A stretch of DNA of 64,000 nt, from NCBI GenBank assembly GCA_965637545.1, contig OZ281497.1, positions 6,634,001 through 6,698,000 on the forward strand. The letters run 5' to 3'. Positions 15,352 to 55,780 of the stretch are shown piece after piece. Within the stretch, counting starts at the first letter, position 1. Every line of letters begins with the position of its first letter. This DNA is from Phallusia mammillata. Lineage: Eukaryota. The notes below the pieces were generated by a model. The model worked only from the letters and a program-made list of their open reading frames with translations. It ran no database searches and had not been told where the DNA came from. The position numbers and the translations under genes were made by a program.

Positions 15352-17900
15352 TTAAACATTTTCAAATAGTTCCATCGCCATTAGTAAGCTTTCGTCAGAA
15401 ACATTAATTTGGTCTTCATAAGTTGGTTTCATTCCTAGTTTTCTTTTTGCAGAATGTGTGTTACTTTCAACATTTTGTTGCATATTTTCTTTATTATTTG
15501 CTCCACCATCTGCAAGAGAGTGTGGTTTTAAAGTGCTACTTTCAGTGGGACAAATCTTTCTCCGTGGTGGCTTGTAAGAGCTATTTCGTCTCTTTGCTTT
15601 TATGCAACTACTAAAGAGGGCAGTGGGCTTTCTTTCACTGCTAATCTCAGGCTTTGCATTCAATATCTTTGCTGTTGGAGTAAGAACAGCACATGTAGTA
15701 ATTTTATCTGCAACAGTCTTACTTCCAGCATTACCACTTTTGAAGTGGTTTAAATTGTTCTGGTTTTGTGCCTTGGCGGATGCACTACTGACCATTGCTG
15801 GTTTTGGTGTATCCGTTTGCAGTTTTGGTTCATCATGGAAAAGATGCTGTATTTTAGCCCATGATTGTTTCGATATAGACAGTGGCTTATTACCAGCTGT
15901 GCTGAACCCAGTAGAGTTTGTAAATCCAAATTTATCAGCATCATTAATGATACTTTGTGCTTTGGCCAATGCTTTAGATGAAACTGTCAAAGGCTTTTTG
16001 CTGGCAGAAATAAATCTTGTTGTTTGTGGACACTCAGAGTTTGGAACTCCAAAATTTCCCATGGATGTAGTATTAACCTCTTTCCTGGTTGAGTTATTTA
16101 ACTCAGAACTGGTTGCTGAAACAATACAAGATTTACTTGTGACTTCTAAACTTGTGTTTTCAACATTAGGTTTCTGACAATTAAAAGCAGTTTGGTCCGC
16201 TTTGCTACAATCCAAGCTTGGTTGCTTCTTTATAACTTTGCAAGCTCTATTCCATGCGTCTTTTGGTACAGTAACACCTTTCAGTGCAGTAGTAGGCTTG
16301 TGTGATTTACCAATATCAGATGAATCAACACTAGCAATGAAATTTGCTGCCTTCTCCCAAGATGTAGCTGAAACTTTTAAAGGCTTCATACTGGCTGTTT
16401 GAAAACCAACGCAAGGTAAGTTGTTGACAGCTCCTTGTTCAACATTTGGATCATTGGTGCGATATGTCTTACTTTCCAACACTTTTGGTAAAGTAGAACC
16501 TGATTTTGCTAAGTTCATACATGGAAAGGAAGTTGTGTCTTTAAGGTTACTGTTACTTTGACATATTTTATTACAACTGCTGTTACCAATTCCAGGGGCA
16601 TCGTATTGGGATTCATTTTTGTTTCCACTGGTATCCACTTTTGTAATGTCATCTTTGTTCAGTGCAAGACTACTGCTGTCAGTAATTTTTGACACACAAT
16701 TAGATTCAACATTACCATTGTTACCGTCGTATACGACAGTTGATTTTACAGAACAAGATTGTCTTTGTTTATCACAGGAAATAGCAACTATTTCAACAGG
16801 TTTTACAGTAGAAATAACAGGTGAGCTTTTGGTGACATTTCTGACAGAACAGCCTTTTTGCTTAACACTGTTTGGAGTTACAGAACTGGCACCAGAAACC
16901 TTGTTAAAAGATCCACTTAAAGTTCTTGCAACCGGTTTGAGATTGGGTTTCTTTTTCCAGGGGTTGAATTCATCTGCTTGTGGTGTAAATGGCCTTTTCT
17001 GTGCTGTACTTTTATCATGAATGACACTTTTTGGTGTTACCTGGTTCCCTGTGCATGGTGCAGTACTTTTTACATCACACTTTGGTGTTGATTGGGATGA
17101 TTCACTGGTTAAAAGGCACTTTGCTCTTTTTCGTTTGGATTTTCGTGACTTTCTAAGAACTGGAGATGTACTCCCATCTACCAACATTGCTCCACAGCTT
17201 GAAGTAGGTTCAGATACTGCAAAGCTTGTAGTATATTTTGTTTGTTTTGCACTCTTTGGAGTATTTAAAAGTTTTGAAATGTCTTTTTGCATACTTTCTT
17301 CAGATCCATTGATACATGTTCTGGAAGAATCCTTCACTTCATTAGATTTTTCCAGCAAATTGGTTTGGTTTTTTGAAATATGGGAACGTGTTTTCAAAAG
17401 CGTTTTTGAAGGACATGAAACATCAGTAGCTTCAGGTTTTATTTGACATGGATAAAGAAACTTTGGTTTTGTTTCCTCTTCATTTTTCAAAGCTTGTGTA
17501 ATTGAAAAACTTGATGGACTTTCACCAGCATCTTTTGTTGTACTTGTGACACTAAATTTGAAAAAAAAGGTTATGTTGAAGAATAAAATACTGCATATTT
17601 AAAAGACAAATACCTTGTTGTAGCAGAAAGTGATTGTGGTACTGCAGGTGTCGCTTTGGTAGATTCATCCTCCACCAAGTCCTGTTTAACTTGTTCATTC
17701 AAATCATCAAACCAATTTGGATTTAAAGGCCCCAAAGCTTAAATTACAAAGTTTGTGTGACAATGACTAAAAGATTTAATGCAATTTAACCAAATTAATG
17801 ACAAACCACACAGCATACCTTTCATAAGTTCTTCATTTTTGGAAATTTCATTGAACAGTTTTTCGTCAATGTCATCAAAAAAGTCGTCACCACAAGCCAT
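15352..17900 (-). CDS. BRCA2: Short BRCA2-like protein (about 801 aa): PALB2-binding motif plus 3 clear and 1 degenerate BRC repeats, no helical/OB/tower DNA-binding domain
   Basis: Exons 17819-17900, 17614-17737, 15352-17551 (2406 nt, phases 1 and 2 compatible). LGPLNPNWFDDL (17700-17735) matches human LGPISLNWFEEL, with a phase-1 intron just before LGP as in human exon 2/3. BRC repeats: GFQTASMKPLKVSATSWEKAANFI (about 16336-16407), RFISASKKPLTVSSKALAKAQSII (about 15946-16017), GFSTAGNKPLSISKQSWAKIQHLFHDE (about 15829-15909); degenerate LKGVTVPKDAWNRACKVI (about 16233-16286). Confidence 0.85.
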
Positions 17901-18930: not shown

Positions 18931-19350
18931 TGAAATTTTTAAGTACAACAGAGACTGTGGGAATGGACAGCCACGGCAGCCACCTCATTGGAAATGTCTG
19001 TTGGTTCAATAAGTGCGTTGCAATCGGGCTGCGACTTTTTACATCCCTTATCGAAGCTTGCATTAGCAAACATATTGTCAAATTTAGGCTTGTATTTGCA
19101 AAATAGTAATGACGTTTTTTTTGTTTGATAGAAGTATAGAGCCCTTGCACAATACAGTTGAAATGTGCATTGTCCATAACGTTTATTTCGTAATGTGTTA
19201 GCAAATGTTGTACTTGTGTTTGTTTTTAAAATATAATGTAGTATGAATTAGCTTCTTATTCTCGATTACTATACTAAATAAGCTGTCACTAGGTTTTGAA
19301 AATAAATGTCTTCAATTATGCCATTTTTACAGTGAAGCAAGAAAAGAAAA

Positions 19351-22300
19351 ATGGATACAAATGCTTATTGGTTGCCCTCTTCGAGTGGAGTGGACAGTTC
19401 AATGCAGGGGAATGGAGTACAACACCAAAATGATAAAGTCAAAGAAACAGACCTTTCGATGGTCAACCCTCCAGCAATGCTTAACTTTACAAGCATATTT
19501 GCTGGTGCAACTGCTGCAGTGGCTAGCAGTGCTGCCGTTGCTAATGCTGATGTCTTGGTAAATTTTCAGGTTTTTATTCTGTTTATATTAGTTTTTTTCA
19601 GCCTCATAATGACTGCGTACCACCTAAACCCTGTTTAAGGGTAAACCAAGAGCTAGGCCTAATCTTCTCATAAACTAGGCTAGCACATTTCTGAAACCAG
19701 CAAGGTTAGCAATTTTGAAGGAATGTCAAATACAAAAGTTTTACTCCAAAGCAGGGCTAATCAGTAGAATTGCCCTTCTTGATCTGATTTGAATAAAGTA
19801 TAACAGAAACCGCTAGTGGTATGCATACAATAGGTTAAGAACCACTGGTTTATGTAATCTACATGAGCAACATAGTTAAGAGTAATACCCTTATAAGCAA
19901 GTCTGCAGAGTATGGCAGCTGCATGCGCAATTTGTTTTGAAAAAAAAAATTGCACGCCAATTTTTCGGGGTTGCAAGCGACAATTTTGCACCAAAGGCAT
20001 TTGATTGTCCTGCCTTGACCTCTCTTACTTGCTTTGCGCCTGCTGAAATTGGTCGTGCACGCGAACTTACTGGTCGTGCATGCGCGTATGCGGGACATGT
20101 CAGTCCTGCACGAGCGAGATCTCGTCGGAAACTGCCATCTTCTGCAGACTGGCTTATAAGTCAAACAATTTGAAATTTGTATCAACCAAAATTTGTTGGT
20201 GTTTCAGAATGGCGGCAAAAACTTTATGGTTGGTGGGCATAGTGGTATGCCATCTCTCAATCAAATTGCAATACCTTCGGCAAACCAACTTTCAAAACGA
20301 AGTGGTGTTTTCCCTATTTCTGGAACTCTCCCTGGAATGGCCACCATCAGTAATATCGGGATGCAAAACGCGAATGTGATAATTTCTGCAAATGCTGCAC
20401 CTATAAACAGTAAGTCAAAAGGATTTTCATTTTATAGCATTGCATGTACTTAGAATCAGTACTCTGCTGCAAAGTAAAATTTGGTACTGGTTGAAATTAT
20501 GTTCGCCTTTTGTTTTGGTGAAACAGATATATAAAAGTCAATGTTGTTTTGGTCTGTGTGCATGGTCAACCTGTATGTTCTGTTACTACATGTGTCGAAT
20601 TAGAACAATGTGTCACTCATAATGATTTACATTCAAGACAATACTATGTACACTATAGGTGTTTTAATGATCCAACAAACCTATTGACATTTTAGACAGT
20701 TGATTTATTAATTTGTCTGGTACTATTGTTTAGTTTCTATTATAATGTGGCTGGTAACACAATTAATCCTATGTATGTTTTTTTGTAGTTGCTGGAGATC
20801 TACAGCAAGTTGCAGTTACACAACTGCCTTTTACCTCCTCTGCACAAATCCCTACATCAATCACGAAAAACTTTATCCAGCAGGCCGCAGCAGAGAGTGG
20901 TGTTGCCATGGTTGCGAATGCTGATTCAACCGCCACTCTGATGCAAAGTAATATTTTCCCAATACAACAACAACAGCAACAACAAGGTAAATGTAACCCT
21001 TTTGTTTTTGTAAATATTGTGTCAATTGGGTGGTGTGTATATTTGTAAGCACTGAATTGAATTGTTTCTAGTTCCAACACCAATTCCACAATCACCTGAC
21101 ACAACAGAAGAACAGCCACTGAAATGTAGTAAGTTTAATATGTTTTCTAAATGCAACTTTTGGTAAACCAAATTCTGTGTATACCTTATTTGCGTTTTTT
21201 AATGGTTTACTGTATATCATCTGGTGTAAACGTTTTAATATGTCTCTCATTGTGTTGTAGAACTGGACTTACATTATATAAATAATAAATACAGTTCTTG
21301 AATATATTGTTACCTATGTTTGTAATTGGACTCGAAAAGTTTCACATGTAGTAAACCAGTCTTTTTATGAAATTTAACAACCCAATTTTTTGCTAGCTCA
21401 ATGCAACAAAACCTTCAAACAGGCGGGACAGCTGAGTTACCATGCATTTGTAGCTCATGCTGAACTTCAAGCCCGACCTCACAAGTGCCTTGCATGTCCA
21501 GAAAGCTTCTTAGCAGCACATCATCTGCAGGTAATGTACACTAATCTCCTCATTTCAACAGTCCCAAATCTATATCATGAAAATTTACCATTGAAAATTC
21601 CCTATTATATGCTGAACAATATGATGTGAGTGATTTAAGTTATGCTTTTGTGTAGGATCATATGAAAGCGGTGCATATGAACAATGATGGACACCAAAAC
21701 AATGTGACATACACATGCAGTGAATGTAATGCCAGTTTCACTAATGGCGGCCAACTGAATTACCACATTTACATGGCACATACTGTTCAAGGACCTCCAA
21801 TTGTACAACACATGTAAGTGCACAGTGTGTAATGTTTTGCTCATTTAACCATCAAGCAATCTCAGACACAGAACTTAAGCCTTAAAGACTGCATCTATGC
21901 CAATGTTGTTATGTGACACTGATTGGAAAAAGGAGCAAAGGCATTCTTTGTGTAAATTTTAAGTGTTGTCCTGGGTCTAAGATTTTCGTTTAATTAGCCC
22001 AGTGGTTCTTACCCTGTGGTATGTCTATAACTAGTGGTGCATGAGTACCTTTCTGTGATACTCACTTTCAGTCAGATCCAAAATTAGGACAGATCTGACC
22101 CAACTGATCAGCCATGGTTTAGGGTAAAACAAATGTTTTGGACATTCCATTGAAATCGCTAACCTGGCTTGATTTAGAAATATGCTAGTCTGTTCAAGAA
22201 AAATAGGCCTGTCTTTTAGGGTACCCATTCATACATGGTTTAGGTCAGGGGTGGGGAGCCTGTGGCCTAAAGGCTGCATGCGGCCTTTTAGGGCACTAAG

Positions 22301-25300
22301 TGCAAGCCAAGTGGTTGCGTACTGGTACACAAAGCGATTTCCGTAGGTCTGCCAAGAGACCCAGGTTCTACAATCTTACTTGTGTTGCAAAAGAACAATT
22401 GTTTGTGCATAATCGAATGTCTTAAACTCGTCTGTGATGTCACAAGCTGCTCTTAGATTAATATTGGTAAACAAGCGAGTTTCTACATTAATAAAATCCT
22501 GAATGTTGTAGTGAGGGTGGAAATGTAGTGAGAAATTTTATTTAGCTTGGACCGTAAGTTTAATAGCACATCGACCAGATTGTAAGTCAACAAATTTGAA
22601 CATCACTGTCCTTGGCCTGGCAAATAGTCTGTGCGGCCTAAACGAGTGTTGATAAACCGTTTGGCGGCCTTCACAAACAAAAAGGTTCCCCACCCCTGGT
22701 TTAGGTGGTATGCCGCTATACAGAAAGTTGAGAACCATTGAATTATCCCATCACTGGGTAAACAATTTAACTTCTATTTATCAGGTGTACACACTGTGGC
22801 AAAAACTTCATGAAAGCTAGTCTTTTGGCTTCACACATCAGAAATGTCCATGGAACTGTTGGAACAAACACTCTAGTGAACAGTAACACCAATATAACCA
22901 CTGTTAATAACACTAATGCCACCACAACTACCAACAATCAAGTTGACATGGCCAACGGCAATACAGAGAAGCCCCTACAATGCAAAGACTGTGAAAAGAC
23001 ATTCAAAAACACTGGATACCTAAAACAACACCTTATGTCTGTTCATGTAAGTGGTAGTGGTAATAGTGATTTTGATGCAATATATATTTTTATAAGTAAT
23101 ATTATTTCAATTTTTATATTCTATTCTCATTTTTTTGAGTGAAAATTTGAATGGGGTATTGTTACATTTTCGTTTGTTCAACTTGGAAATAGGCTTCTTA
23201 AGATGATACTTCATTTACAGAACAAGCCTCACAAATGTGAGGAATGTGGAAAAGGTTTTGGCCGACGGAGTGATTTGAATCGACATATGCGAGGAGTGCA
23301 CATGCGCGAACGACCACATCACTGTAGTAAATGTGGATGGACATTTGCTGAAGCTGGAAACCTTAAACACCACATGCAGGTTGGTCGAAGTTGATTATCT
23401 TATCATCTTCCAACCATTTTCATTAACAGTGGTTAGAAATTAATTAGGCTTCATAGACATTTTTTGTCAGTGGTTCTATCACAAAAGTAGTATTTTTCAG
23501 CCAGTTCTGTTACAAAAAGTTCATTGACAGAAACCAGTAATGCTAACTGCTTCGCTGATGTCATAAAATTTTTTAATACGGTTCTATAGAACTATCCAAA
23601 CCTGAATCCCACCACTGCCTATACCCCATCTAAACTAAAAAAGAAAAGTGTTAAGGTATATATAAAGTCCCATCTAAACTACCTTCTACAGTAGGATTTG
23701 CCTTCAAAGAATTTTTAGAATCATAAAATAATAAAATTAATGTAGTAAAGAGAGAAACCAGCCTGCAATTTTGTTATTTTTGTGTATTGTTTTGCATCAA
23801 CAAAAAATATTTTTAGGCCGTGCATTCAAAGGAGAAAAATTATCACTGCCAGATATGCTCAAAAAGCTTTTCAATTGTTTCCTACCTGAAAACCCACATG
23901 ATTAGAGTTCACAACATCAATGAAAATGTTAAAAACACAGGTAAATATTCACATATTATTGTATAGTTTGTTATGTGTACTTTTTAAGCCACTTTTGTGC
24001 TTGACCAAATGATATAACCAGGAACATCTAATAACGAGAGATAATCACAACACTTTGTAAACTAACATTGGGTGATGCAAAGATCGCAAACAAATGTTTT
24101 GCAAGCTTATGGTTAGGGCTATTTGTGTTGGAGTAAAGTTTTGTAATAAAGATAACTTTGAATTGGACTTAAAAACTTACAGCTCTAGCATCAAACCAAT
24201 GCCGGGTTTCAAATCTGCTGGTTACTGTGAAAAAAGTAAAAGTTAAACCATATTTTTTTAATTTTCGTTGTCTTTCCATTGATACAGTGTTGAAAACAAT
24301 ATCAGGAGCTAATCCACTGATACATCATATATGTATGTGTGAAGACAAAATGGTTATAGCATACATGACCCATTGACCCGATATCAATTTACTGTGTGGT
24401 TTAAGTGCCCAACAGAATTAAAGCATCTTTATCTTGTCCATCATTCAACTGCATTCTTTTTGTTAACAGCCACCACAATGGTAACCACGGATGCAATGGT
24501 GACCAATCAGCAAGTTTTTCCAGTGCAAGAAACCCAACAAACAGAAATTGCTACAATTCAGTTACCAACACCACAATCTCATATGAACAGATGTTATGAA
24601 TGTGGCCAGGTCTTTTCCAGTGTGGCCATGTTGCAGGTATTTATCTTGTGAGGTGTATGTGGTTTTTCCAAGTCTTTAGGCCAGTAATTGAGAGTAACAA
24701 CAATTTAATTAAAAAAGTGAATTGAATTCATATTTTGAGTAATGCTGACAGGGATTTTATGCAGATTTCACTTTTTAGCATTGACTGATCACTTGACTTT
24801 TCCATTACACTAATTCAACTATTTTTGCTTTACAGAACCATGTCATGTCAACTCACCCACAACCATTCTGGTGCACTGTTTGTGGAGAAGGTTTTTCACA
24901 AGCATTTCAACTCCAGGTAGGATGAGAGCATAGCTACCATGGGACTGACAAAGTTTTTAGGAGCTATTATTTTGTGCCCTTAAGTCAAGTTTACCGTATA
25001 AACAACTGTTGCATTGTGTGGAATTGGTTTGACTAATGTACTTGCTTATAACACAGTTGTTAGAAGGGGTAAGAATTCAGCAATCATCACCCCACTACTT
25101 TGTACAGGGCCTGGCATTGTTTTATGTTTATTGCTCAGATAAAATATGATGTATAATGCTTGAAAACGCTTTTTCTGTTTTGCGCTAACCCTTATAGCTT
25201 CTATCCAGGATGTTAAGAAAAATGTTAAACAACACAATTTAACAGATAGGTGTGTTTACAGTATCACTTGCAAGCTCGTCATTCGAACAACGCCTCCGCC

Positions 25301-28300
25301 CCGCCCCCATTACTCAACCAATCAAACAACCAGGAGGTTGCGAGGTCGACGCCGATGACTACTAACATGATTGACCAATCAGCGGACGAGATTTCCAATC
25401 TCGTGAACAATAATAACAAGTGCAGTGCATGTGGTGAATTCAAGTCCTCGGACAGAGATCATGTCTGCCCCAGCTTAAAGGCAAGTAAAGTAAGAAATTG
25501 TGCTTTTGAGGGGTTCGCGAGGTCAACCATTGATCAGCTAAGATGAACATTCATTATGGGTCCCCTTCCCTGACATATTGTTTTTGTCTATATTTTTTTT
25601 TCTTTTTTTCCGTCTAACGCGGATTTGTTCCCACGTTTTGGTCAAGAAAGAATGGTTCAAACTTTTTCAAATTTACACACATTATAGATATTGGTTTGAT
25701 CCCTCGGTTCACCCACAGCCCCCCAAAACGTGAAATTTTTAAAACGGCTATACTTGCTAAAGCAGATGATTCTAAAGTTTCATATTTTGTTGATTGGTAC
25801 ATTGCAGCGTATTTTAAAGTATTTTGTAACTTGAAGTGGTAAATATCCATTTTCACCCCTTTACCCCCAAGGATCAGCCCTGAAGCGACCACCGATCACG
25901 ACACACTGTACATAGTTCATAGTACGCCAGGTTCTGTTTGGACGCTTCAGGGCTGATCCCAGTTATGACTGGGTGTTCATCTCAGCTGATCAATAGCCGA
26001 CCGGGCGATCCCCTACTACGAAGCTGACATGTGCAGCATACCGAGGCAAGCAACGGTGCTTTCGACTTTTGGCGGGTTCACCGCTGAACCTGTGTAACTT
26101 AGTTGGTACAGCACGAGTCCAGGAAAGACTCCTGTCGTGGGTTCGAATCTCGCCGCAAGCTAGATTTTTCTATGCCTTGCCATATAGGAATGCTTGGTGA
26201 CCGGCTGATATTTAAGCCTTCAATGGGCCTGGCGTACTATGATTTGTAACATAGCCGCAACACATTTAGTGGTATTCGAGGCTCTTGTTTTTACCAACTA
26301 GAAATTATATTTTCCAGCAGGCTGCACTAACTGCTGCTGCGGCTATGGCAATGGCAGGGGAGCGCCCTCATCTCTGCACCAAGTGTGGAAAGGGCTTTAA
26401 GACGGCCACCCATCTCAAACAGCACGTCAGATGCGTCCACACCAACGATCGACCTCATAAGTGCTTTCAGTGCGGGAAAACCTTTGCCAGAATGAGCGAT
26501 CTAAACCGGTGTGTATTTAGACTGTTACTTCTGCTTTGTAATATACCAGGGGTCGGCAACCTTTCAGTCGACGCGTGTCAATTTACTTGTTATTTCGTTT
26601 TAATGACCTCGCGTGCCAACGTTTTTCTAAATAATAGTGGTTCGTGCCAGAAGATATCAATAATAAAGAGAAAGCAGAGTGTTTTGTGCACGTAAGGCTG
26701 AATTTCATAACAATGGCATGATAAAACAAGCAGAGCAACAGGTAAAATTGTTACTTCAATATAAACACGCAAATCGGTTGGCGTGCCATGAAACCCACCT
26801 CGCGTGCCAGGGGTAGCCGAACCCTGTAATATATTTTTCATGTATGCATCAAAAGGTTATGTGACAATCTTCAGTCAACCGTTCATATCTAAATTCTCTG
26901 AGAATAATTTTAAAACTGGACGTGGTAGGCTTAGCAAATTTAACCAAGTTTTGGAAAATAAAGTGCAAATAATCGTTTTTAAAGTCCACTACAGATAATT
27001 GCACGAAGCTCGCTTATGAACTAGCTTTGTCTCATCGTGCATGCACAATATCTCACTTATGACTCTCAAGTTTGTTCTAAAAAAATCAAAAACTTGTTTG
27101 CCATTTTATATCAACAACATAAACATGTGGTAACAATTACATCGTCGTTGCAGGCACGTTAAAGGAGTTCACCAGCGCCAGAAGGTTCCCTCAAAGTCGC
27201 TTCGCTTGCTCAGTTTGAAGTGCAGTGAATGCGGGAGCGGCTTCTCCGAGACTACCCAACTCAAACGTCACATTCTGACAGTTCATTTACATCAAAGACC
27301 GTGCTTTAAATGCGCAGACTGCCAGGCAGGGAATATTGCATTGTTTAACGCAGCGTTTCAAGAGATTAAATTTACACAGAGTTAATATCGATGACTTGAT
27401 TTAACTTAGTCCTATTTGAGGTTTTTCAAACTTATTTACCCCAGAGCACACTTAAAATTACATCATTGACAGTAAAATGGAAAATTAGTCATCAACTTTA
27501 AGGTTGATATCATATAAGTAACTTTTTCGTTATTTTTTGCGCGCCGTTTGAGAACCACTGGCCTAATGTGGTTTCTAGGCAATTGACGGCTTTATAAGGG
27601 TTGGTACCAAATTCTAGACCAGGACCAACCATTTTGCTGTACGTCCTATATTCCCTCTTACCCAGAAGCAAAGATTTTGACCCCTATTCCAGGCCTTAGC
27701 CAATATGAACATTATTTGGTATTCATTGACATACCAAGCAAAGTGTAAACTGTTTTTTTTTGCAGGAGGGTTTTGCTGATGAGATGGCATTTAAAAGCCA
27801 CATATGTCATGAGGAGGAGCGCCCTCACGTGTGCAGTGTGTGCTCTAAGAGATTTTCGGAGGCCACACAATTGAGAAGACATCTAAGATCGGCTCACACT
27901 AACCAAGGAGCCCAGCCACAGGTACAGTAGTCTAAATGGACTATGTTGTTTTCATATTGTAACGTTTTTTTTCCTTTTATAGCATCATTGTCATCAATGT
28001 GGACGCAGTTTTACTCGACCTGTGGATTTGGCTCGACATATACACGCTGTTCATTTAAAGGTAATATTCAAACTTAGTCTTGTGCCGTTATTTTCATCAT
28101 CAAACTTACTCAAATTTTTCATCATCAAACTTACTCAATAAACTTACTCAAAAATCTTAACGAAAATTAGCGTTATAATGTTATGGGGCGTTTAGGCTAA
28201 AAATAAACTGCAGACCTTCCTTTAATCAGCTGCAACAATTCATGGACACATGTAATAATGGAACAGTCGAAATTGGAAAAAAATGTTCGGCTGAATGTGT

Positions 28301-32065: not shown

Positions 32066-32312
32066 CAACTTATTAGCAAGATACAATAACAGTACATGTG
32101 CGCCATACGCTAGTAGGGATGGAAACCATTACAGATAACTCCGTTTAATTGCATAGGGATCATAAACCCCAACCGTACCGATCTGTCAGGAAATCGTCCG
32201 GTTATTTGCATGAAAAAGCTTCGCAAATTGGTTGTGCGATTAACCGAATTGGTTTGTGTAGCAAATCAACAAAAAGCAATTGAGAAACATATAACGTATA
32301 ACAAGCATATAA

Positions 32313-32318
32313 TTTATT
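32313..32318 (-). terminator. Putative polyadenylation signal of the CaaX gene
   Basis: AATAAA about 90 nt after the stop at 32409-32411. Confidence 0.5.
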
Positions 32319-32408
32319 GGTGCAAAAAACGTTACCTAAATTTCACTGACGTACGAAGCCAAAATAGAGAGAAAAAATAGCAAAACTCTTTGGGCATAAT
32401 AAAACTCT

Positions 32409-35400
32409 TTACATCACCACGCAACAACTGCATAGACCCGATTTGTCACTAGTGGTGATTGGAAAACTCTTTTTTCGTCGTTTTTTCCCGCTGGAAGTCG
32501 GTTCGTTGTGTACCACGTGATCTTTTGTTTCATCAATTTCGTCAGTGGTATTTGCCTAAAAAATATCATTAATAGTAATGAAGGCACTATTGTAGGCGAA
32601 AAAAATACAATGTTTCTTTGGTTATCCCATCTAATTGGGATATTTTTAATTCGACTGGATAAGCAAAAAAATACTCGTAATTACATTTGTACATAAAAAC
32701 ATCTCAAGTTGCTATTATTAGAGTAATCTTTTGTGTTTAAAGTTGCCTTTAAAATAAACCCCACAGATATAACTTGTGTTTAAAGTTGCCTTTAAAATAA
32801 ACCCCACAGATAAATTGTAAGGTATAGAATCGTTTTTACCTAGGAGGTGAAGTTTGAAGCTAAAACATATATAGCAGGGCATCGCAAATCGCTTGTGTCA
32901 TTATATTGCCATTAACAAATTTACCAATTGTTTCAGCGTTGCCCTTTTACCAATGCATAGAAATTTAAAACATAAAAAAATCGCAGTTAGTTTTTAACCG
33001 GACCTCATATAACAGTTAATAACAATAAGGCAATCGGATAATCGAAAGTCAGATGACCGAGAAAGTCCACTTTTCAGAATCATAATACACGAATCATTCC
33101 ACTCACTGTTGTACAAGATTCGATCCTGGATTCTTGTACAACTTCCTCTATAGTAACGGTCTTTCCTGGTTGTCCGACCCTGTCGTCACCAGTTATCAAC
33201 ATCTCCTCCACCTCATCCAGTGCTGCGTCATCGTCTGTGACGTCATTATCGGATGTGGGGTTCTCTGAACAAGATAAGTACAGAGTTTGGCAAAAGTAAG
33301 TTAAAGACGTTATTTTTTTGCGATCCAATTTTTGCCTTTGTTACGCCTCTGTAATATTTTTACAGCTGCTGACCTATAGTGAGTACGGCAAGAACGTAAA
33401 TTTTATTAAGTGGTTCACAGCATGATGTATGCTTAGTGCAGAGAGGGAGGAATTGAATCCTTGCACAAATCTTAAACTGTTTCTTGTACGTTTTGTTTTC
33501 ATTCATTGAATTTGGAGTTACAAGCTTTTTTAGCTGAACGGAATTCAGCTGATTTTTTGCAATTTAAGTGCCGGAGCGTGAAGAAAAAGCTAGGTGTACT
33601 CTAAACATCACATCACGAAGATAACGAGCGCATATTTAAAACTTAAAGTTAACCAAAAATCGCCTTAAAACTCGTCTTTATGCAATATTTCTTAAGGATT
33701 TACAAAGCGACCCACGCTACGAACTATGATATAGAATTTTGAACCAACCTACGATCTTGCTAAATTCAAATGCATTTGTTTACCTTTCTCTGGGGTTGCT
33801 TGGCAACGACCTTCCTTAGCATCAACAAAGAAATCTTCTTCTCGTAAATCCATATTAAGTTCGCCAAGGTTCTCAGCGAAAGCGTTTGATTTATTTTTCA
33901 TTCCAATCAGGGCGTCTTCTTCTCCTGGGAGCGTCTCCTCCTCAAGTACGACCTCTAGTGTACGTGAGCGGTAAACCTCCCTAGATGAGGACGTTTGCAA
34001 AGGTTCGGAGACACAGGAATCAGGCGAAGTTGAAAGATGTGAATCTTGATGCTTAAGATCGCTAGTTTCTGTGTCTTGAAAACATGATTCGAGGGAAGAA
34101 TCACTATTGTCTACATTAACTTGGTTCTTCTGTGGAGTATTTGATAACATCAGCCCTTTGGCTTTATCTTGGGAATCTGGTTTTTCAGTTTGGTTTGCTA
34201 CATCGGTGTTAGGGTCAACTTGAAATACTTGATCTTGAGCGGTAGTTAAGTTTTCCGCAGAAGGTGATATTGTTTTCGGTAATGTCTCTGCCGTTTGGGC
34301 AACATCTGTATCACTGGTGTTTATTTGTTTATCAATTACATTTATTTTTCCTTCAGGATTAGATGCTTCTTTTGTAGTTTTATTAACCGCATCTTTAGCA
34401 ACTTCGACATGATCCAAATTTCCACCCAAAATATTGTTTACGTCACAAGTTTTAGGTAAAGGATTTTCTTTAGGAATTTCAGCTTCTAAGGATTCAGTTT
34501 CAACTGACATGTCTTGAACCGAATAAAGCTCAACTTCTGTATTGGAAAGGTCGTTCGGGCTTTCGATATGGTCCATAGAGCACGGGGTCACGTCAGGCTG
34601 TTGGTTGGGGTAACTTGAGTTCACCATGGAGCGCAGGATTTCTGACTCATCAAGCGACGGCGGCTTGATATCGCTAGGAGTCGAACTTACAACCTTTGCA
34701 TCTTCGCCAAAGTTGGACATCTGTGAAATATTGCATTAAAAACGTAAAATAATTATTTGAGATTTGTTTAACATTGACAAAATTATAGGTTTGCTTGTGA
34801 AAAGCTATTTTGGGTGGATTAAAACCTGGGGTTCGATTCCAAAAACTCCAAGACTCTCTTCCGCTTCGTCGCGTACTCGCTCAAGCACAGCGGAATCGCC
34901 TTTTGCCCATGCTTCTCTCGTTAAACTTGTTTCTTTATCTCCGGCGCTCTCTCTCATTTCGAGAGAATTTGAAACGAGCTCCGTCACTCCGCCTTTGTCC
35001 ATTTCAGAGGTTGTATCAGTAACGGAGCTGTTTTCCATTGTAGGTGATGGTTCCGCTTGAATAATTGTTAAGAGTTCGTTCAACCCTCCTCCGATAACGC
35101 CTTGGTGAATTCCAAATCTGAAAGAATGATCCGTGAATCAAACAAATACATTGATTTCTGAAGTTTTTCTGAAGTATCAGGATTCAAATGACTTATAAAC
35201 TGAAAAATTTTGCATTGCCTTTTATTTAGATTTGCAATCACCTGCCACATTTTTTTACAAAAAAAGCTAGAAAAGAAATCTTCTGATATCGGAAAGTCTT
35301 ACCAGCTGTACAGAAAGACACCTTTACCAATTGATTCACAAAATTTTAAGCATGCAGCACACAACAACATAATTTTGTCGAATCATTTTCAGTGCTTAAT

Positions 35401-38400
35401 TTGAGAAACAATTTGAGGGCTGAAAGAAACAGTCAAGCAACAAGTGATAAATGGGACTGCTTAAAAAATATTGAAATTTGTGGCTGTCGCACGCATTAAG
35501 TGCATAACTATAAGCCCTAAACCAGCGGTTCTCAACCACTGAGCCATGGAAGCATTTTGATTGGGCCACAGACCAATCAAATTTGTTAGTTGCAAATTTG
35601 AAACAACTAGTTGTTTTCTTTCTTTCATAAAAATCTACTGGGCCGCAGAATTTTTGTGCAATAAAAGTGGGTCACGAAAGAAAAAAGGTTGAGAACCATT
35701 GCCCTAAACAGTTGATAAAAATTTCACTGCAAAAATTAGTATTTTGTTATTTCAAGCGCCAAATCCTGGGAACAGAGACTTACGCTTTAGGATTGGTCTT
35801 AGACTTTTCCACAATATTCACACGATGAGCAACCGGTTTTTCTTTAATCGCTTCGTGGTTGCTTCCGAAAGACCCGGTCATCAACCAATCATGTGTGTCC
35901 TTATGGTCACCTGACTTCTGGTACGGTTGTTCTACAACGTCATCATCTGATGACGTATCGAGTGACGAAGAAGAGTAATAAGCTTCGACTGGTGATTGGG
36001 CGATCGTCGACAACTCGTTGTATACGTCACAGTCAAGGGCACGGTCGAATGGGTCGTGACGTTGGTTTTCGGAATCGATCGAAGAAGAACTTTCTAGATT
36101 TCCTAAACACAAGTATATTCTTAAATACACTATCCACGATTTTGAATAATTTGAGCAGAAAGATCAGAGACAGTATACCTGATGATGACAATAGCACTTG
36201 TCGAAACGTCGTTATATTTTACACAAATATACTGGCTCCGATTTTTCTGCACAAATGTATTCATTTCAGTAATAGTAATGGTAAAGAGTCACACGTTTCG
36301 CAGCATCGGGATAGCCAAGTCTCTTTCGATGCAAGTACTGAATCACACTATGGCAAATCAAAGTTAATTGAGTCTATGAATGTTTGTCTATTTGCATTGA
36401 CTTGTGACATATCAGTTCAACAATAGCAGTGCTTGATACAAAACCAACAAAACAACGTTAACAACGTTGATTACGAAAATTGTTTAAAAAACGAAATGAT
36501 TTTGTGACCCAAAATAGGTTATATTCTTGTTAATGCAGGAGTTTATGGAGTTTATATATATATATAAAAACATGTTAAAAGGCTTCCAATGACTTTTCCG
36601 AAAATTCTTAGCGCACAAAACTGTAAGTCACATCGGTCCGAAAAATTAACCTATATACTCGTTTTTAAAACTGACGTTATTTTTAAAAACCATTTCGCAT
36701 AATCAGCTCATAAATTCAATCTCTCACAAATAAAACAAATATTCTCTCATAAAAAAGTCATAAAATCGTTTTCAAGGCATAACCAAACTTCTAATCCACA
36801 TGTATAAAACACGACCATTCGGAAAACCATAACCTAAGTCTTAGGACCTACACAAAACCTCACATTCTGCATTGAGCCACAATAAACTACGACCACCCAA
36901 CGTGCCAAAAACCAACTGTATCTAACTTGAGAGGCAAAACATAAGTGGTCGATACAATAATAAGTCTTCTTTTAAAAAGCTAGCAAGTGCACATAAGGCT
37001 CCATGGGCATTATATCGGATTGCTCACAACCCACCGGGGAGTTGTATTTTTTACAAACTCTCAAAAGAAATCAATGATGGCTTACTTTTGACTTGGAGCG
37101 ATGGGACGATCTGGGCCCAATGCAATTAAGCGACACCAATCAAGCGTGAACATATGAATGCGGACACGTGACAAATGTTGCGCCAATGATTTAGATGTAA
37201 TTGTAATTGGGGCATAAAAAAGCGTTTCTATTGTATTTCAATTCATGAAAACATTTTGTAATACATAAAACACTAATTTATTCACAATTGCTACGATAAA
37301 TATAGCTTACAAAACCTAAAATAACGCAACATATTTATCACGTAAAACAGGCAACCAATTTATCAGAGATGTAAAAGCAACAAAAAACTTCTTAAATGCT
37401 TTGATAAATGTACAAGGCCACATGCCTTGCAATGCCTAAAATTGGGCAACTTATTTATCACGCAAAACGGGCAACACATTTCTAAGGGTGTACAAACAAT
37501 AAAAAGCTTGTTTTCTACTTTAGACCATAAGGGGTATCAAACTCATGGGGCTTCGAGGGCCACATTGCAGTTGGTAATTATGCCAAGGGCCGCATGTGAT
37601 TTTTAATCTAGTTTTATAAACTTTAACCCGGGGAGCACAACCTTTTTGCTACGACGGCCACAATGCAGATTCTTATATCACCAACAGCCGCCAATTACCT
37701 GCTGGTTTTTGTCTTAAAATTACAGATGTAAGGAAATAGATTTATATTATATGTATAACTGACGCCCCAAAAGCCCAGATTAATTTCCAACTTGATGTAC
37801 AGATTGAGCTGCCCAGTGTGAAGATCAGTCTTAAGTTCTGTAAATGTTTGTTTTATGAATAGCTTCAACTTTAAAAAGTTAAAAATTATTATATTTGGAT
37901 AAAAATCTATAAAATACTAAAATACTACAATTGCTGTTAATTGTTTGAGGGCCGCATTGGAGGGCTTAGTGGGCCGCATGCGGCCCGCGGGCCGCACGTT
38001 TGACACCCCTGCTTTAGACAGTATTTAAAATAGGTCAAATTGAACAATATAACAAAAGCAGTCACACAAGCCAACAATTGGTCGTAACTTACGATTTCGA
38101 AACTGTTCGTTAACCCCGTTTACTCCTCTTATGTCTGAAGCCGACGTAACTGGAGTCCTGAAAGTTACAATGTGATATTGTTAAACTTTCTCAAATAGGC
38201 AGAAAACAATTTTTTGTGTGTGTTGAACAAAAGGAAAGATTTCACCTGAAAGAGTTGTATAACTGAAACTGATAACAGCAACAGTCTATTACAAAAGCAT
38301 TAGTTAATACAATTTGATCGATTTCAAACAAAACGGGTTGTGTGCAAAATGTTAAATATGTGAAATAAGTATGTCACCACAACGCTAGAAACGGGTTCTT

Positions 38401-40006
38401 CTGTAGGAAATGACAACAATCAATGACGTTTCTAGCCTCGATTATAAGGCGTTTTGTTGAAAGCAAACATAAACGTTGTGTGCAAAAAATAATGCATTTT
38501 TTTGTAACAACTGAAAACCATATGATTGTAACTTGATGCTTTGGCATTGTATTTTAGCCATGAGCAGTAGTTAAATGATGCCGGTATTCAACTATAAACA
38601 TCGAACACTTTTTTATTATCTACAGCAGTGATTCTCAAACTGTGTGCCGCGAGAGATTTCCAAGTGTGCCGCGAAATATTTCCTATTTTGAAGTGCAAAC
38701 ATTCCCTCGTATTTTAGGATTCCATGACGAAATACTGGTGTACATAACAACGTTTCCAAGCTCATATGTTTGTTATTGGTAATGAAAAACATCCATAGCC
38801 ACCAGAATAAAGTTGAAAAATAACATTCTTTGAACGTTTTTTTATGTTTACCTGCGAAGTGTGCCGCAAAAGAAAATTGAAGTTTTTTAATGTGTCGCAT
38901 GCTTAAAAAGTTTGAGAACCACTGATCTACAGCCAAAAAACTGCTATACAGTATTCACAAAATAGTTTACCGCATTGGTTCTTAACCTTTCAGTCTTTTG
39001 CCATTTTTCAGGGTGCGATTATTTTTATCGTTTTTTTGTTACGTCACTCTTCTGCTACGTCATACTTGATATTTTTTTTAAATGAAAAAAGGTTAAATTA
39101 AATTATTCCGGTCGTTTTTTGGGTAACGGTAATACAATGTTATAAAAACCACCGGCTTAGACCAATTTTCATTTCCTCCATTTTTACTTGTTTTGTTCAC
39201 TTATTACGCACACCTTCGTAACCCAAACGTGAATGGGTCAATGTTGGGGCGATTCACATTAAAATGTATATTTTCCGTCGAAGCGTCGCCAAAGAGACTC
39301 TGAGCTCTTTCCATCGGAGGACGCGTCCTTCTGTTCCTCCTATTTCTGTTCTTCCTCCAACTCCGGGTGCTCGCCGTGCTCCTGATCGATCCCGCATCCG
39401 AACTCGCGTCATCCAGATCCTCTTCCATACTGTCACGTGACCCTCCGACTGACATCCGAAGGTAACCGGAACATGTGCGATTCATGAATGCACGGCGCCG
39501 ACTAAAACAAAAAACATAAATTGCTTTTAAAATCGTTTTATTGCATAGTTCCAGAACTATTTTAAGGGTCTTACTTTTTTCCCAGCACAACTATTCGCGC
39601 ACTCGATGCCAGTGCAAAGTAACCAAAATAAGATGAAACGTGCTTTAACGAGCCATTGATGGCACCAGCACACAGTATAATCTTTACACTTAACGTGTTT
39701 GGAGTTAAATTGCCTGTTTTTAACACCAATCACGGGACATTTTTTTTACTTATTTCTCCATCTAGCAGACACAAGTATACGACTTATAGACGTCGAATTG
39801 TGCTAAACTAAATTGTAAGTTGGTTGCAAATATATTTGTTGTGACATTTTTAGTTGAAACTGCAAGCGCAAAACACGTCCAAAACTGTCTCAAATTGAGA
39901 TGTTGCGCTAGAAACATAACCATAATTTCATCAAAAACATATGTATGTTTGGGAAAGTATGGAATAAAACTGAAATTCACCTGTAAACTGAATCACGGTT
40001 CATCAT
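32409..40006 (-). CDS. Uncharacterised acidic, low-complexity protein (about 743 aa) with C-terminal polybasic + palmitoyl/CaaX anchor and an FFAT-like motif
   Basis: Exons: 39981-40006 (frame open up to the acceptor at 40032), 39214-39501, 38093-38157, 35784-36102, 34826-35117, 33784-34720, 33107-33264, 32409-32555; all GT-AG and phase-compatible (2232 nt). Ends ...GKKRRKKSFPITTSDKSGLCSCCVVM*. The true N-terminus is uncertain. Confidence 0.8.
32731..32812. repeat. Direct tandem duplication, period 43 bp
   Basis: ttgtgtttaaagttgcctttaaaataaaccccacagata exactly twice (32731, 32774). Confidence 0.9.
35523..35701. mobile_element. hAT MITE
   Basis: CAGCGGTTCTCAACC / GGTTGAGAACCATTG; perfect TSD CCCTAAAC. 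Confidence 0.88.
37526..38011. mobile_element. Non-autonomous hAT
   Basis: Left CA(taa)GGGGTATCAAAC, right GTTTGACACCCCTG with GGGCCGCATGCGGCCCGCGGGCCGCA; perfect TSD CTTTAGAC. Confidence 0.85.
38626..38924. mobile_element. hAT MITE
   Basis: CAGTGATTCTCAAAC / TTTGAGAACCACTG; perfect TSD ATCTACAG; internal GTGTGCCGCG repeats. Confidence 0.9.
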
Positions 40007-53148: not shown

Positions 53149-55780
53149 TTACGTTGTGCGTCCAAAACAAGGCCACCCAGCCAGGGGAGGGAGATACCCG
53201 GCGCCCCCAAGAGGGTTAGGGACTTGCGCTGAGGCGGGGAACCCTGTGAATGGCAAAGTGGGGTTTGTTGCGGCGCCGAAAAATCCTCTTGATGCAAGTG
53301 GGTTTTGGTAAAACTTTGCCACCATGTCATAGTTGGCTAGGAGATGATTTTGACTGCTGGGTATCATGGATGTTGGTATTCTGGGTGGTGGCAGTGGAGA
53401 AGAGATTACTGAATCTGGAGAGGCACCTCTATGGCTAGAAGATTCAGGAGGACAATGGCTGACCTCCTTGTCAACTCTTCTGTCTTCCAGCTGGGGATGG
53501 TACGAAGTCGCTGAAGAAGATGAGGAAAATTTGGGCGTTGAAGTGATGATTGGTTTCATCATGTGACTGTGTCCTGGCATCCGCATTCTGGAGGAGGACT
53601 CGCAAGACGGAGAGGATACTGGGCTCTTGGCGCGTGGCGATGAAGATGGTGACAAAGAAAATTCAGATCCTTTAGAAATCCTCCTTTCTTCTTCCCGAAT
53701 TGATGGTGGGACATCTTCGGTACTTTTCTTGCCGATGAGGGACTCGATTGAGAATGGCGAATGTCGTTTTGTTTTCTTTTGTACCTCTTCATTGTCACTA
53801 GGTTGAGTGGATGAAGACTTTGCTGCGATGGCCAAGTTTGCGGCAAAGAGCCTTGCTTCGGGGCTCTCTCGTTGCATGGCAGGGTTAAATGGAAAATGTC
53901 CAGAGTTGAGAGAGTTCAAAATTGGGTTTCCACAAGGAAATTGAGATAATGCGTTTGAACCCAAGTTCAGAAGAGCTGCTTGGCGACTTGCCAATTCTTG
54001 TGGGGTCATCAGGGGTACTGCTGGGGGCAGAGGGTTCATGTAAGCGTACGAGTTGAGGGCGGCGGCCATAGCAGCTGCTTGGGGGTTCCCAGGCATTCCG
54101 TAACCCCGTCCGTAGGGGTTCGAAGCCCCACCCATAGCAAACATATGGTCACGGAACGGGTCACGCTGTTGTCGCTTGAATCGCTTGCGTCGGCGAAGGA
54201 AGGAACCGTTGTCGAACATGTCTTCTGCATCAGGGTCCATGGTCCAATAGTTTCCCTTTCCAGGGTTGCCAGGTTCCCGTGGAATTTTCACAAAGCAGTC
54301 GTTTAAGGAAAGATTGTGACGGATTGAATTTTGCCAGGCGGGAAACTTCTCTCTGTAGTATGGAAATCTGTTCATGATGAACTCGCAGATTCCGCTAAGA
54401 GTAAGTTTCTTATCCGGGGACTGGAGAATGGACATTGTAATAAGAGCGATGTAGGAATATGGCGGCTTGACATGTTTCTTCTTGCCATCGCCGCTGTCGT
54501 CTTTGTCGCCCGACACTTCGCCGCAATCGCTTTCCGACTGTTCTTCGGGTAAGGTTTGTCCAGAAGGGCCTTCGTTGCTAGAAAGCGAAGGTGACCTGAC
54601 GCCGCCATCTTGTTTTTCGGTCAGCGCTTGAGGCAGGAGAGTCGCCGGGTTTTGGGGCTCTAAATCCGGCGAAGAGTTGTCAACTTCACGTTCTTCGTCC
54701 GCAGCGTTGTAGCGAATTTGTCGTCGATCGAAAAACTGTGGGGCTGGGGAGGAGACTGAGGTCACATCGACTTCGGTTTCTGCTGAACCAAAAAAAGAAG
54801 TTTTAAATGCGAAATCAACGCAAAATGCATTCAGCAAGCAAACACAAGTATCGCAAGGCTTAGAACCGGGCCAAAGTATTGATGGATTGTTTGCAAACTT
54901 TTGCCAGCGCGGCCCATTAATTGTTGCCACGCGTGAAGGCGATGACGGCAAATCAGATCCCCATAGCAAGGCGGCCTTTGATCTAGCGGTTTGCCGCTGA
55001 CAACGTACTGCCTTCGCCTTGATCCAAGATAAACTAGTGCTTGGACTACGCGTTAACAGCCTCGCGCTCGCTTAGGAGATTATTTAATCCATCGCAGTCT
55101 GTGTTTGATTTAACAAATCGGGTCGCATTTGAATCAACAGACTTAACTGCGTCATGAAATTTGCGATCGTCCCAACGCGTGAACTAATGTCTTCTGAATT
55201 TATCAACATCGAATATTTCAAAACATACTGATTACAACTTTCGGTACTAAAAGTCAAGCAACTACAAACGTTGGGCTTCTTTGGAATTATACCAAAAAAT
55301 AAAAGTACAAACAGATTTCCTGCATAAACTATGAAGCTTAAAATTACCTGTAGTCTCTCCGTTTGGGATATAGCGATCTAAAATAGCCGTGGATGACATC
55401 GGTGCTACTGAAGACTTCAGCTGGTCTTGGAGTTGTTTCACAGCAGCATTCATAAACTGCAGAGCCGAGATGTCCCGAAAATTGTCCGGCGATGTACTAG
55501 ACCTCGATGAAGACTGGCCAATCTCTGTAGGCGATGCTCTATGATGACTTGGTCGCCTGTAAGGGTGGCTGTAACCTGGAGTGTTGCTGCGTTGTTCAGA
55601 GGCATCATTTCGTCGCATAACTCCTCCCCCAACACGTTGACTGATCTCTCGCTGTTGCAGGTACTGATGTCCTGGGTAATTCATTGCCAGGTCTAAGTTG
55701 GGCGTCGGTCGCGCTTGATATGGAAAACGGGCTGATTGGACTTCTGCTTGGGTCATGTGTCCGTAGGTCTGAACTGTCAT
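53149..55780 (-). CDS. FoxD: Forkhead box D transcription factor, about 688 aa, 2 exons
   Basis: Exon 1 55348-55780 (MTVQTYGH...ETT, donor G|GTAATT), exon 2 53149-54782 (acceptor TTCAG|CA), phase 1. FoxD-type forkhead [75 protein letters not shown]...[12 protein letters not shown]; acidic EVDV segment; eh1 motif FSIESLI. Confidence 0.95.

Follow-up and report, generated by a model that had tools for sequence, protein, structure and literature searches.

A disordered acidic protein of Phallusia mammillata with a predicted farnesyl-palmitoyl anchor and ascidian relatives

On the minus strand of a 64,000-nucleotide stretch of the Phallusia mammillata genome (GenBank assembly GCA_965637545.1, contig OZ281497.1, forward-strand positions 6,634,001 to 6,698,000; hereafter the window, whose own numbering is used throughout), an eight-exon gene encodes a 743-residue protein that we read as an ascidian-restricted, intrinsically disordered, acidic scaffold, anchored by farnesyl and palmitoyl groups at its C-terminus and using a module of short N-terminal motifs as its working end. 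We put the probability of this reading at roughly 60%. The gene is genuine, is expressed, and has an existing deposit as an uncharacterized protein, and sequence comparison assigns the locus as the P. mammillata orthologue of Ciona LOC100186872. An earlier note on this DNA had singled out a C-terminal CaaX box behind a polybasic run and, upstream of it, a motif resembling the FFAT (a pair of phenylalanines within a stretch of acidic residues) sequences that bind VAP on the endoplasmic reticulum (ER), and had proposed a tether between the ER and the plasma membrane. Here we establish the structure of the gene and its expression, and the pattern of conservation, the disorder, and the motif scores of its product, from which we infer lipidation, localization, and partner recruitment; the lipid-anchor half of the earlier proposal is upheld and the tether half is not.

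Gene structure and expression

Reading of the DNA places the ATG at 40006 and the TAA stop codon at 32409-32411; an in-frame stop lies 23 codons 5′ of the ATG. The joined exons form a single open frame of 743 codons that begins with MMNRDSVYS and ends with CSCCVVM, and the host genome is that of an animal, with a GC content of 38%. Transcript contigs from four independent studies (runs X1, X3, X6, and X8) were compared over positions 32300-38299. The spliced contigs, 1.9-2.5 kb long, define joints at 36102/38093, 35784/35117, 34826/34720, 33784/33264, and 33107/32555, and all of these are GT-AG after assignment of ambiguous bases, which bears out the splicing implied by the earlier note. Exon 6, with the FFAT-like motif, is joined to exon 7 and through it to the CaaX exon in contigs of all four studies, and a single contig also spans the upstream exons 4 and 5 in three of the four. 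The proposal of a lipid-anchored tether had been made to depend on the exon at 32409-32555; contigs of all four studies carry it, and no transcript without it was found among them, although contigs show presence only and a minor isoform is possible.

Every exon lies on the minus strand. For exon 1, the coding part (39981-40006, MMNRDSVY..) is inferred from the ATG, from a GT donor after 39981, and from the start of the deposited protein, and the 5′ untranslated region (UTR) extends at least about 130-180 nt upstream of it. Exon 2 (39214-39501) is delimited by AG/GT boundaries, by a loose contig end at 38159 that reads into it, and by conservation; 132-181 nt of contig sequence lie beyond it. 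The joint between exon 3 (38093-38157, 65 nt) and exon 4 is present in four of four runs, as are the joints of exon 4 (35784-36102) generally and both joints of exon 7 (33107-33264, 158 nt), which is acidic. Transcript joints also set the limits of exon 5 (34826-35117) and of exon 6 (33784-34720, 937 nt). Exon 8 (32303-32555) contains the last 48 codons, the stop (147 coding nucleotides with the stop included), and the 3′ UTR, with contigs reaching 32300-32342. In one short X8 contig (105 nt, three mismatches, depth 5.7), the acceptor lies 9 nt within exon 4; its joint, 36093/38093, amounts to an in-frame loss of three codons and may reflect a minor isoform or an allele.

The window translation closely matches the deposited P. 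mammillata "uncharacterized protein LOC100186872" (CAB3263033.1, A0A6F9DJA3; 743 aa). Six residues differ between the two, all outside the motifs, and the start of CAB3263033.1 agrees with exon 1, which lies outside the contig-compared range. A literature search on the gene names gave no match.

Relatives and pattern of conservation

The only relatives obtained by searching with CAB3263033.1 and with a profile of four sequences were ascidian, from Ciona intestinalis (582 aa), Ciona savignyi (represented by a truncated model), and Clavelina lepadiformis (several isoforms), together with older partial Ciona models, including COS46.2. The profile search was word-seeded and scored 8000 candidates; the one full HMMER search, run against 1.84 billion representative proteins, used the non-conserved 312-residue exon 6 and returned the protein itself (99% identity) and one spurious match. 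The latter, a tandem-repeat protein in which many weak 29-residue matches had been summed, was rejected as a relative. A word-seeded search with exon 6 gave no match, its length window having left out the full-length protein. Pfam scans of exons, whole proteins, and fragments identified no family (DUF5550, New_glue, and CEP192 were sub-threshold noise), a profile search of the PDB found no relative, and searches of the Phallusia genome with exons 2 and 5 found no paralogue. The Ciona gene has the same exon series, minus the intron after codon 8, and a convergent C2H2 zinc-finger neighbor is common to the Phallusia and C. intestinalis loci; because they share both, we regard the two genes as orthologues.

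Alignments of these proteins reveal two conserved parts, the N-terminal 250 residues and the last exon, whose translation terminates in C-x-C-C-a-a-M. The N-terminal part comprises SVYxRRRAFMNRxCxGYL, an acidic serine cluster, a basic block followed by SLFGDA, then DPFTF, HK[DE]T[RH]DWL[IM], and GGLNE, as well as NELSTIxQSPVEPYYSSSSL, which is nearly invariant across the aligned ascidians. On the minus strand of the window, exon 2 encodes RRAFMNRxCxGYL (39459-39497), the acidic serine cluster, the basic block WRKNRNRRNRR (39327-39359), RAQSLF (39291-39308, within RAQSLFGDA), and DPFTF (39225-39239); exon 4 encodes the most conserved block of all, YNELSTIAQSPVEAYYSSSSL (35960-36022), and HKDTHDWLM (35879-35905); exon 5 encodes GGLNELL, followed by a Phallusia-only insertion with a predicted helix. 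Cys19 (39471-39473; Cys21 in the orthologues), which lies inside RRAFMNRxCxGYLK, is invariant in all full-length orthologues and offers a possible second site of acylation, which would hold the N-terminus at the membrane. Of the only four cysteines in the C. intestinalis protein, one is Cys21 and the others belong to its tail.

Between the two conserved parts lie about 400 residues that are barely alignable, with identities to the orthologues of 0-24% in 25-residue windows and large segments set against gaps. Exon 6, an acidic, disordered, and fast-evolving spacer, contains a single conserved element, SSTPS, near its start. Beyond this spacer, conservation resumes: exon 8 is conserved in Ciona and Clavelina, with tails reading CSCCVVM in Phallusia, CNCCAVM in C. 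intestinalis, and CCCCSTM in Clavelina. Since the tail is conserved in three genera, it is not a product of chance.

The protein as a whole carries a net charge of -61 and is 19.7% Ser plus Thr. An AlphaFold2 model built on a shallow alignment of four sequences has a mean pLDDT (predicted local distance difference test) of 39 and contains helices only at residues 57-67, 194-201, and 293-321; an ESM Atlas model has a pLDDT of 0.35. Structure matches to the latter, with template modeling (TM) scores of at most 0.33, were discarded as meaningless, and feature searches gave no usable match. These models predict a protein that is almost wholly disordered, and neither a signal peptide nor a transmembrane stretch is evident in its sequence. 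Residues 293-321 (window about 34853-34939), the sole part modeled with some confidence, are predicted to form an amphipathic helix pair with pLDDT values of up to 75 in the Phallusia-only insertion; on inspection, they do not fit an AKAP-type RII-binding pattern.

The C-terminal lipid anchor

The translation of the last exon ends in SSGKKRRKKSFPITTSDKSGLCSCCVVM, with the cluster C737-S-C739-C740-V-V-M743 and its CaaX box CVVM at 32412-32432, directly before the TAA. CVVM immediately ahead of a stop is a farnesylation box of standard type. It is also the box of N-Ras, and the human PALM1 tail is CKCCSIM, with a spacing identical to that of CSCCVVM. Met at the X position of a CaaX box directs farnesyltransferase. 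By analogy with such tails, C740 is most likely farnesylated and C737 and C739 palmitoylated. The arrangement resembles the hypervariable regions of H-Ras and N-Ras, in which a terminal CaaX box ending in Met follows palmitoylatable cysteines directly upstream, although the ascidian protein has no GTPase domain. It also resembles the tails of paralemmins, in which a basic stretch precedes C-x-C-C-a-a-M; in paralemmin-1, prenylation and hydroxylamine-sensitive palmitoylation of the tail have been demonstrated, the tail targets the plasma membrane, and a form without the CaaX box is cytoplasmic (PMC2148134). Xlcaax-1 (xlgv7), a maternal 110-kDa Xenopus protein, is similar by description only, in that a basic cluster and a pair of cysteines lie upstream of its CaaX box; it has been cited as an otherwise unrelated membrane-associated protein that is both farnesylated and palmitoylated (PMC2148134).

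The earlier note had favored a mechanism of the K-Ras type, in which a polybasic run assists the prenyl group. The run in question, KKRRKK (residues 719-724; 32469-32486, minus strand), is where it was reported, and the other elements then listed are present on this strand: the CSCCVVM ending, REEDFFVDAKE, WRKNRNRRNRR, RAQSLF, and the acidic, S/T-rich remainder. Yet KKRRKK stands 12 residues before C737 and 15 before C740 and is not adjacent to the lipidated cysteines as in K-Ras4B, where farnesyl is combined with a polybasic stretch. At the aligned place Ciona has RNRK and Clavelina RPK, so that the strong run is specific to Phallusia. Because KKRRKK is distant from the cysteines and weak in Ciona and Clavelina, we favor an anchor composed of prenyl and palmitoyl groups over one of the K-Ras type: what is conserved is the dual-cysteine arrangement of H-Ras and paralemmin. 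The case for the lipid anchor is strengthened by the retention of C-x-C-C-a-a-M in three genera, downstream of some 400 residues that are barely alignable, and by the CaaX exon being present in all four contig sets.

A model for the protein

We posit that, with farnesyl on the CaaX cysteine and palmitoyl on the two cysteines directly upstream, the C-terminus would be attached to the plasma membrane on its cytoplasmic face, with delivery via the Golgi palmitoylation route. The N-terminal 250 residues would be the working end, where short linear motifs (RRAFMNRxCxGYL, the acidic Ser cluster, the basic helix, SLFGDA, DPFTF, NELSTIxQSPVEPYYSSSSL, HKDTRDWLI, and GGLNEL) may recruit partners to the membrane. 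The acidic, S/T-rich middle of 400 residues would then be a spacer that evolves rapidly, with segments gained and lost.

Several points weigh against this model. Its ascidian restriction depends on the searches described above, which may have overlooked remote relatives of the N-terminal module. Lipidation, localization, and partners are deduced from sequence, for the orthologues as much as for the Phallusia protein. The Clavelina box, CSTM, has a polar residue at a2 and offers a poorer context for farnesyltransferase. Finally, the two basic clusters, WRKNRNRRNRR, which is conserved as a basic block, and KKRRKK, could serve as nuclear localization signals. A CaaX box combined with a nuclear localization signal is the arrangement of lamin B, and the protein could be a farnesylated one that belongs to the nuclear envelope or to endomembranes, its CaaX box anchoring it at the inner nuclear membrane or on the ER or Golgi instead of the plasma membrane. 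Against this, the two extra tail cysteines, which in Ras and paralemmin mark palmitoylation and delivery to the plasma membrane, are conserved in three genera, and the C-terminal basic run is not conserved; we therefore consider a nuclear or endomembrane protein unlikely and prefer a scaffold anchored at the plasma membrane.

The FFAT-like motif and the proposed tether

Under the tether proposal, the lipidated tail would sit in the plasma membrane while the FFAT-like motif bound the MSP domain of ER-resident VAP, so connecting the two membranes in Phallusia. The motif consists of the flank DLREED and the core F1-F2-V3-D4-A5-K6-E7 (33812-33850, core 33812-33832, minus strand). The start reported earlier for REEDFFVDAKE, 33812, is correct, whereas its end is 33844 and not 33841, a figure one codon short; the motif was also said to lie 130-140 residues upstream of the tail, and the actual distance from the end of the core to the prenyl cysteine is 107 residues. 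When scored with the penalty table of Mikitova and Levine 2012 (Table S2A), under which a motif of seven elements may have at most 2 suboptimal ones, DLREED-FFVDAKE accumulates 2.5: 0.5 for a flank charge of +3, 1 for Phe at position 1, and 1 for Val at position 3. In that study the cut-off for detectable targeting to VAP was 2, motifs lacking 2.5-3 or more elements failed to target the ER, and about 200 human proteins scored 2.5 or better (Mikitova and Levine 2012, Table S2B).

Several features speak for a functional motif. F2, D4, A5, and E7 are optimal, and four acidic residues occupy the upstream flank. A score of 2.5 or better was reached by only 2.4% of 5000 composition-preserving shuffles of the protein, a rate that is mildly unusual when one protein is considered and unremarkable over a genome scan. 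The segment around the motif is predicted to be disordered and accessible (AlphaFold2 models residues 601-644 as coil with pLDDT below 50), and the motif does not vary among the contigs of the four studies. A partner exists, since the genome encodes VAP-like MSP-domain exons, the domain being split by introns. By our own estimate, the 107-residue disordered linker together with the VAP stalk could span the gap at a contact site. FFAT-containing VAP ligands that form ER contact sites, such as OSBP/ORPs, CERT, Nir2, AKAP220, and protrudin, likewise have, in a disordered region, an F-x-D-A-x-E core preceded by an acidic tract, and the Phallusia protein is, like them, expected on a non-ER membrane.

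Against these features stand the score itself, which exceeds the cut-off and is equaled or bettered by about 200 human proteins, and the makeup of the motif: a Phe in place of an acid at position 1, Val at position 3, and an Arg within the acidic tract. Genuine FFAT motifs are usually conserved, and this one is not. An alignment-free scan of the C. intestinalis, C. savignyi, and Clavelina proteins for FFAT motifs yielded best scores of 4.5-5, at unrelated places, and the entire motif-bearing segment (about residues 576-650) is a Phallusia insertion that aligns with gaps in the orthologues. Nor does the Phallusia protein have a lipid-transfer or other functional domain. The FFAT-like motif is thus neither ancestral nor above threshold, and lack of conservation of its core is an outcome that the earlier note itself had named as decisive against the tether. 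We regard an ER-plasma membrane tether as highly improbable. In our model, REEDFFVDAKE would have arisen in one Phallusia-specific segment of the spacer and would be at best a weak, non-ancestral VAP-binding site, making VAP tethering at most a weak, lineage-specific extra.

Relationship to paralemmins

The likeness of the tail to those of paralemmins raises the possibility that the gene is a divergent tunicate paralemmin, the missing PALM orthologue of invertebrate chordates, which would have kept the anchor and a degenerate motif around a conserved Trp. Paralemmins (PALM1, PALM2, PALM3, and palmdelphin; PF03285) are described as vertebrate-only (PMC3405040, PMC11887803), and none has been reported for Ciona (PMC3405040). 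Like the ascidian protein, they are acidic, largely disordered, phosphoprotein-like chains in which conserved cassettes, including a Trp-Leu motif in a short helix, alternate with poorly conserved linkers. We compared the ascidian sequences with the paralemmin features as defined in PMC3405040 and PMC11887803.

The tail agrees: in three genera it has a three-cysteine cluster, Met at X, and K/R upstream, spaced as in paralemmins. The protein is, moreover, acidic with few conserved cysteines. The paralemmin motif, K-X-[KR]-X-X-R-[ED]-X-W-L-[ML] (PMC3405040), is approached by the conserved HK[DE]T[RH]DWL[IM], which lies in a short predicted helix and resembles the published motif minus one residue. 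A regular-expression search for the exact motif, however, matched none of six ascidian sequences, and a relaxed pattern fits C. intestinalis and Clavelina only, failing in C. savignyi and in Phallusia itself; the relaxed pattern occurred in 1 of 20000 shuffles, a figure to be read with the fact that the pattern was picked after seeing the data. The Trp motif also lies near residue 200, behind conserved N-terminal motifs that are unrelated and have no counterpart in the descriptions of PMC3405040 and PMC11887803, whereas in paralemmins the motif occupies the center of an antiparallel coiled coil that is N-terminal and about 120 residues long (PMC11887803). No such coiled coil appears in the AlphaFold2 model, in which the helices at 57-67 and 194-201 are the only ones in the first 290 residues and pLDDT is mostly below 50. 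The alignment contains no conserved stretch resembling the MIF motif, and no β-sheet domain that could correspond to the core domain is predicted, although PALM3 also lacks these two features; REAW and VFG in exon 5 were considered as paralemmin-like or MIF-like and rejected, as the segment is a Phallusia-only insertion.

Profile searches point the same way. PF03285 matched none of the four full-length proteins, nor fragments with the Trp motif or the tail, at E values up to 10. A six-frame scan of the Phallusia genome with PF03285 gave no match and so offered no other paralemmin candidate, but its control genomes went unmatched too. Gene architecture differs as well. Paralemmin genes have small 5′ exons and a large last exon G that ends in the CaaX box, often with an AKAP2-like gene downstream, whereas in both Phallusia and Ciona the CaaX box has a small terminal exon of its own, preceded by the large exon 6 and by the small exon 7. 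The Phallusia gene has no AKAP2-like gene downstream, where the neighbor is the C2H2 zinc-finger gene, and a genome scan with AKAP2_C was without match, as it was with its control genomes.

Of the paralemmin features, then, only the tail fits, and the earlier note's caution that homology was unsupported beyond the tail proved well founded. We consider a divergent tunicate paralemmin very unlikely, and we hold the fuller version, in which the LOC100186872 family is the tunicate counterpart of paralemmins with a weak VAP-binding site gained in Phallusia, to be just as doubtful. If it were true, a membrane-skeleton organizer would predate the vertebrates, and its ancestral form would be open to study in a simple chordate. 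By analogy, the ascidian scaffold may well work like a paralemmin, as a prenyl-palmitoyl-anchored acidic protein, its membership of that family not being established.

Other observations in the window

The convergent C2H2 zinc-finger gene is a multi-exon gene on the plus strand (window about 19300-27000), and its microsynteny is conserved with C. intestinalis. The next gene upstream encodes a forkhead transcription factor (606-aa open frame, 53152-54969, minus strand; Forkhead domain, E 1e-37); Ciona has a WD40-repeat gene there instead. A 712-aa open frame on the minus strand (15355-17490) contains a BRCA2 repeat (Pfam E 1e-13). Within the introns of the gene described here, parts of unrelated transcript contigs match the short stretches 35543-35662 and 37571-37622 and then continue into dissimilar sequence; the stretches resemble pieces of dispersed repeats with expression elsewhere. 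At about 32725-32810, in the last intron, inspection by eye shows two direct tandem copies of a sequence of about 45 bp (ATCTGTGGGGTTTATTTTAAAGGCAACTTTAAACACAA). A tRNA scan of the introns found no tRNA-like gene.

Implications

The practical outcome for the combined CaaX-plus-FFAT tether is negative, since that idea rests on a sub-threshold, species-specific motif. Phallusia eggs and embryos are transparent and a standard for imaging the cell cortex and the cortical ER, so tethering is cheaply testable in this animal. Should the anchor be real, ascidians would possess a separate family of disordered scaffolds with a prenyl-palmitoyl anchor, one that combines conserved N-terminal linear motifs with a spacer evolving by the gain and loss of segments and that would be a compact case of short motifs, the FFAT-like site among them, emerging in disordered linkers ahead of function.

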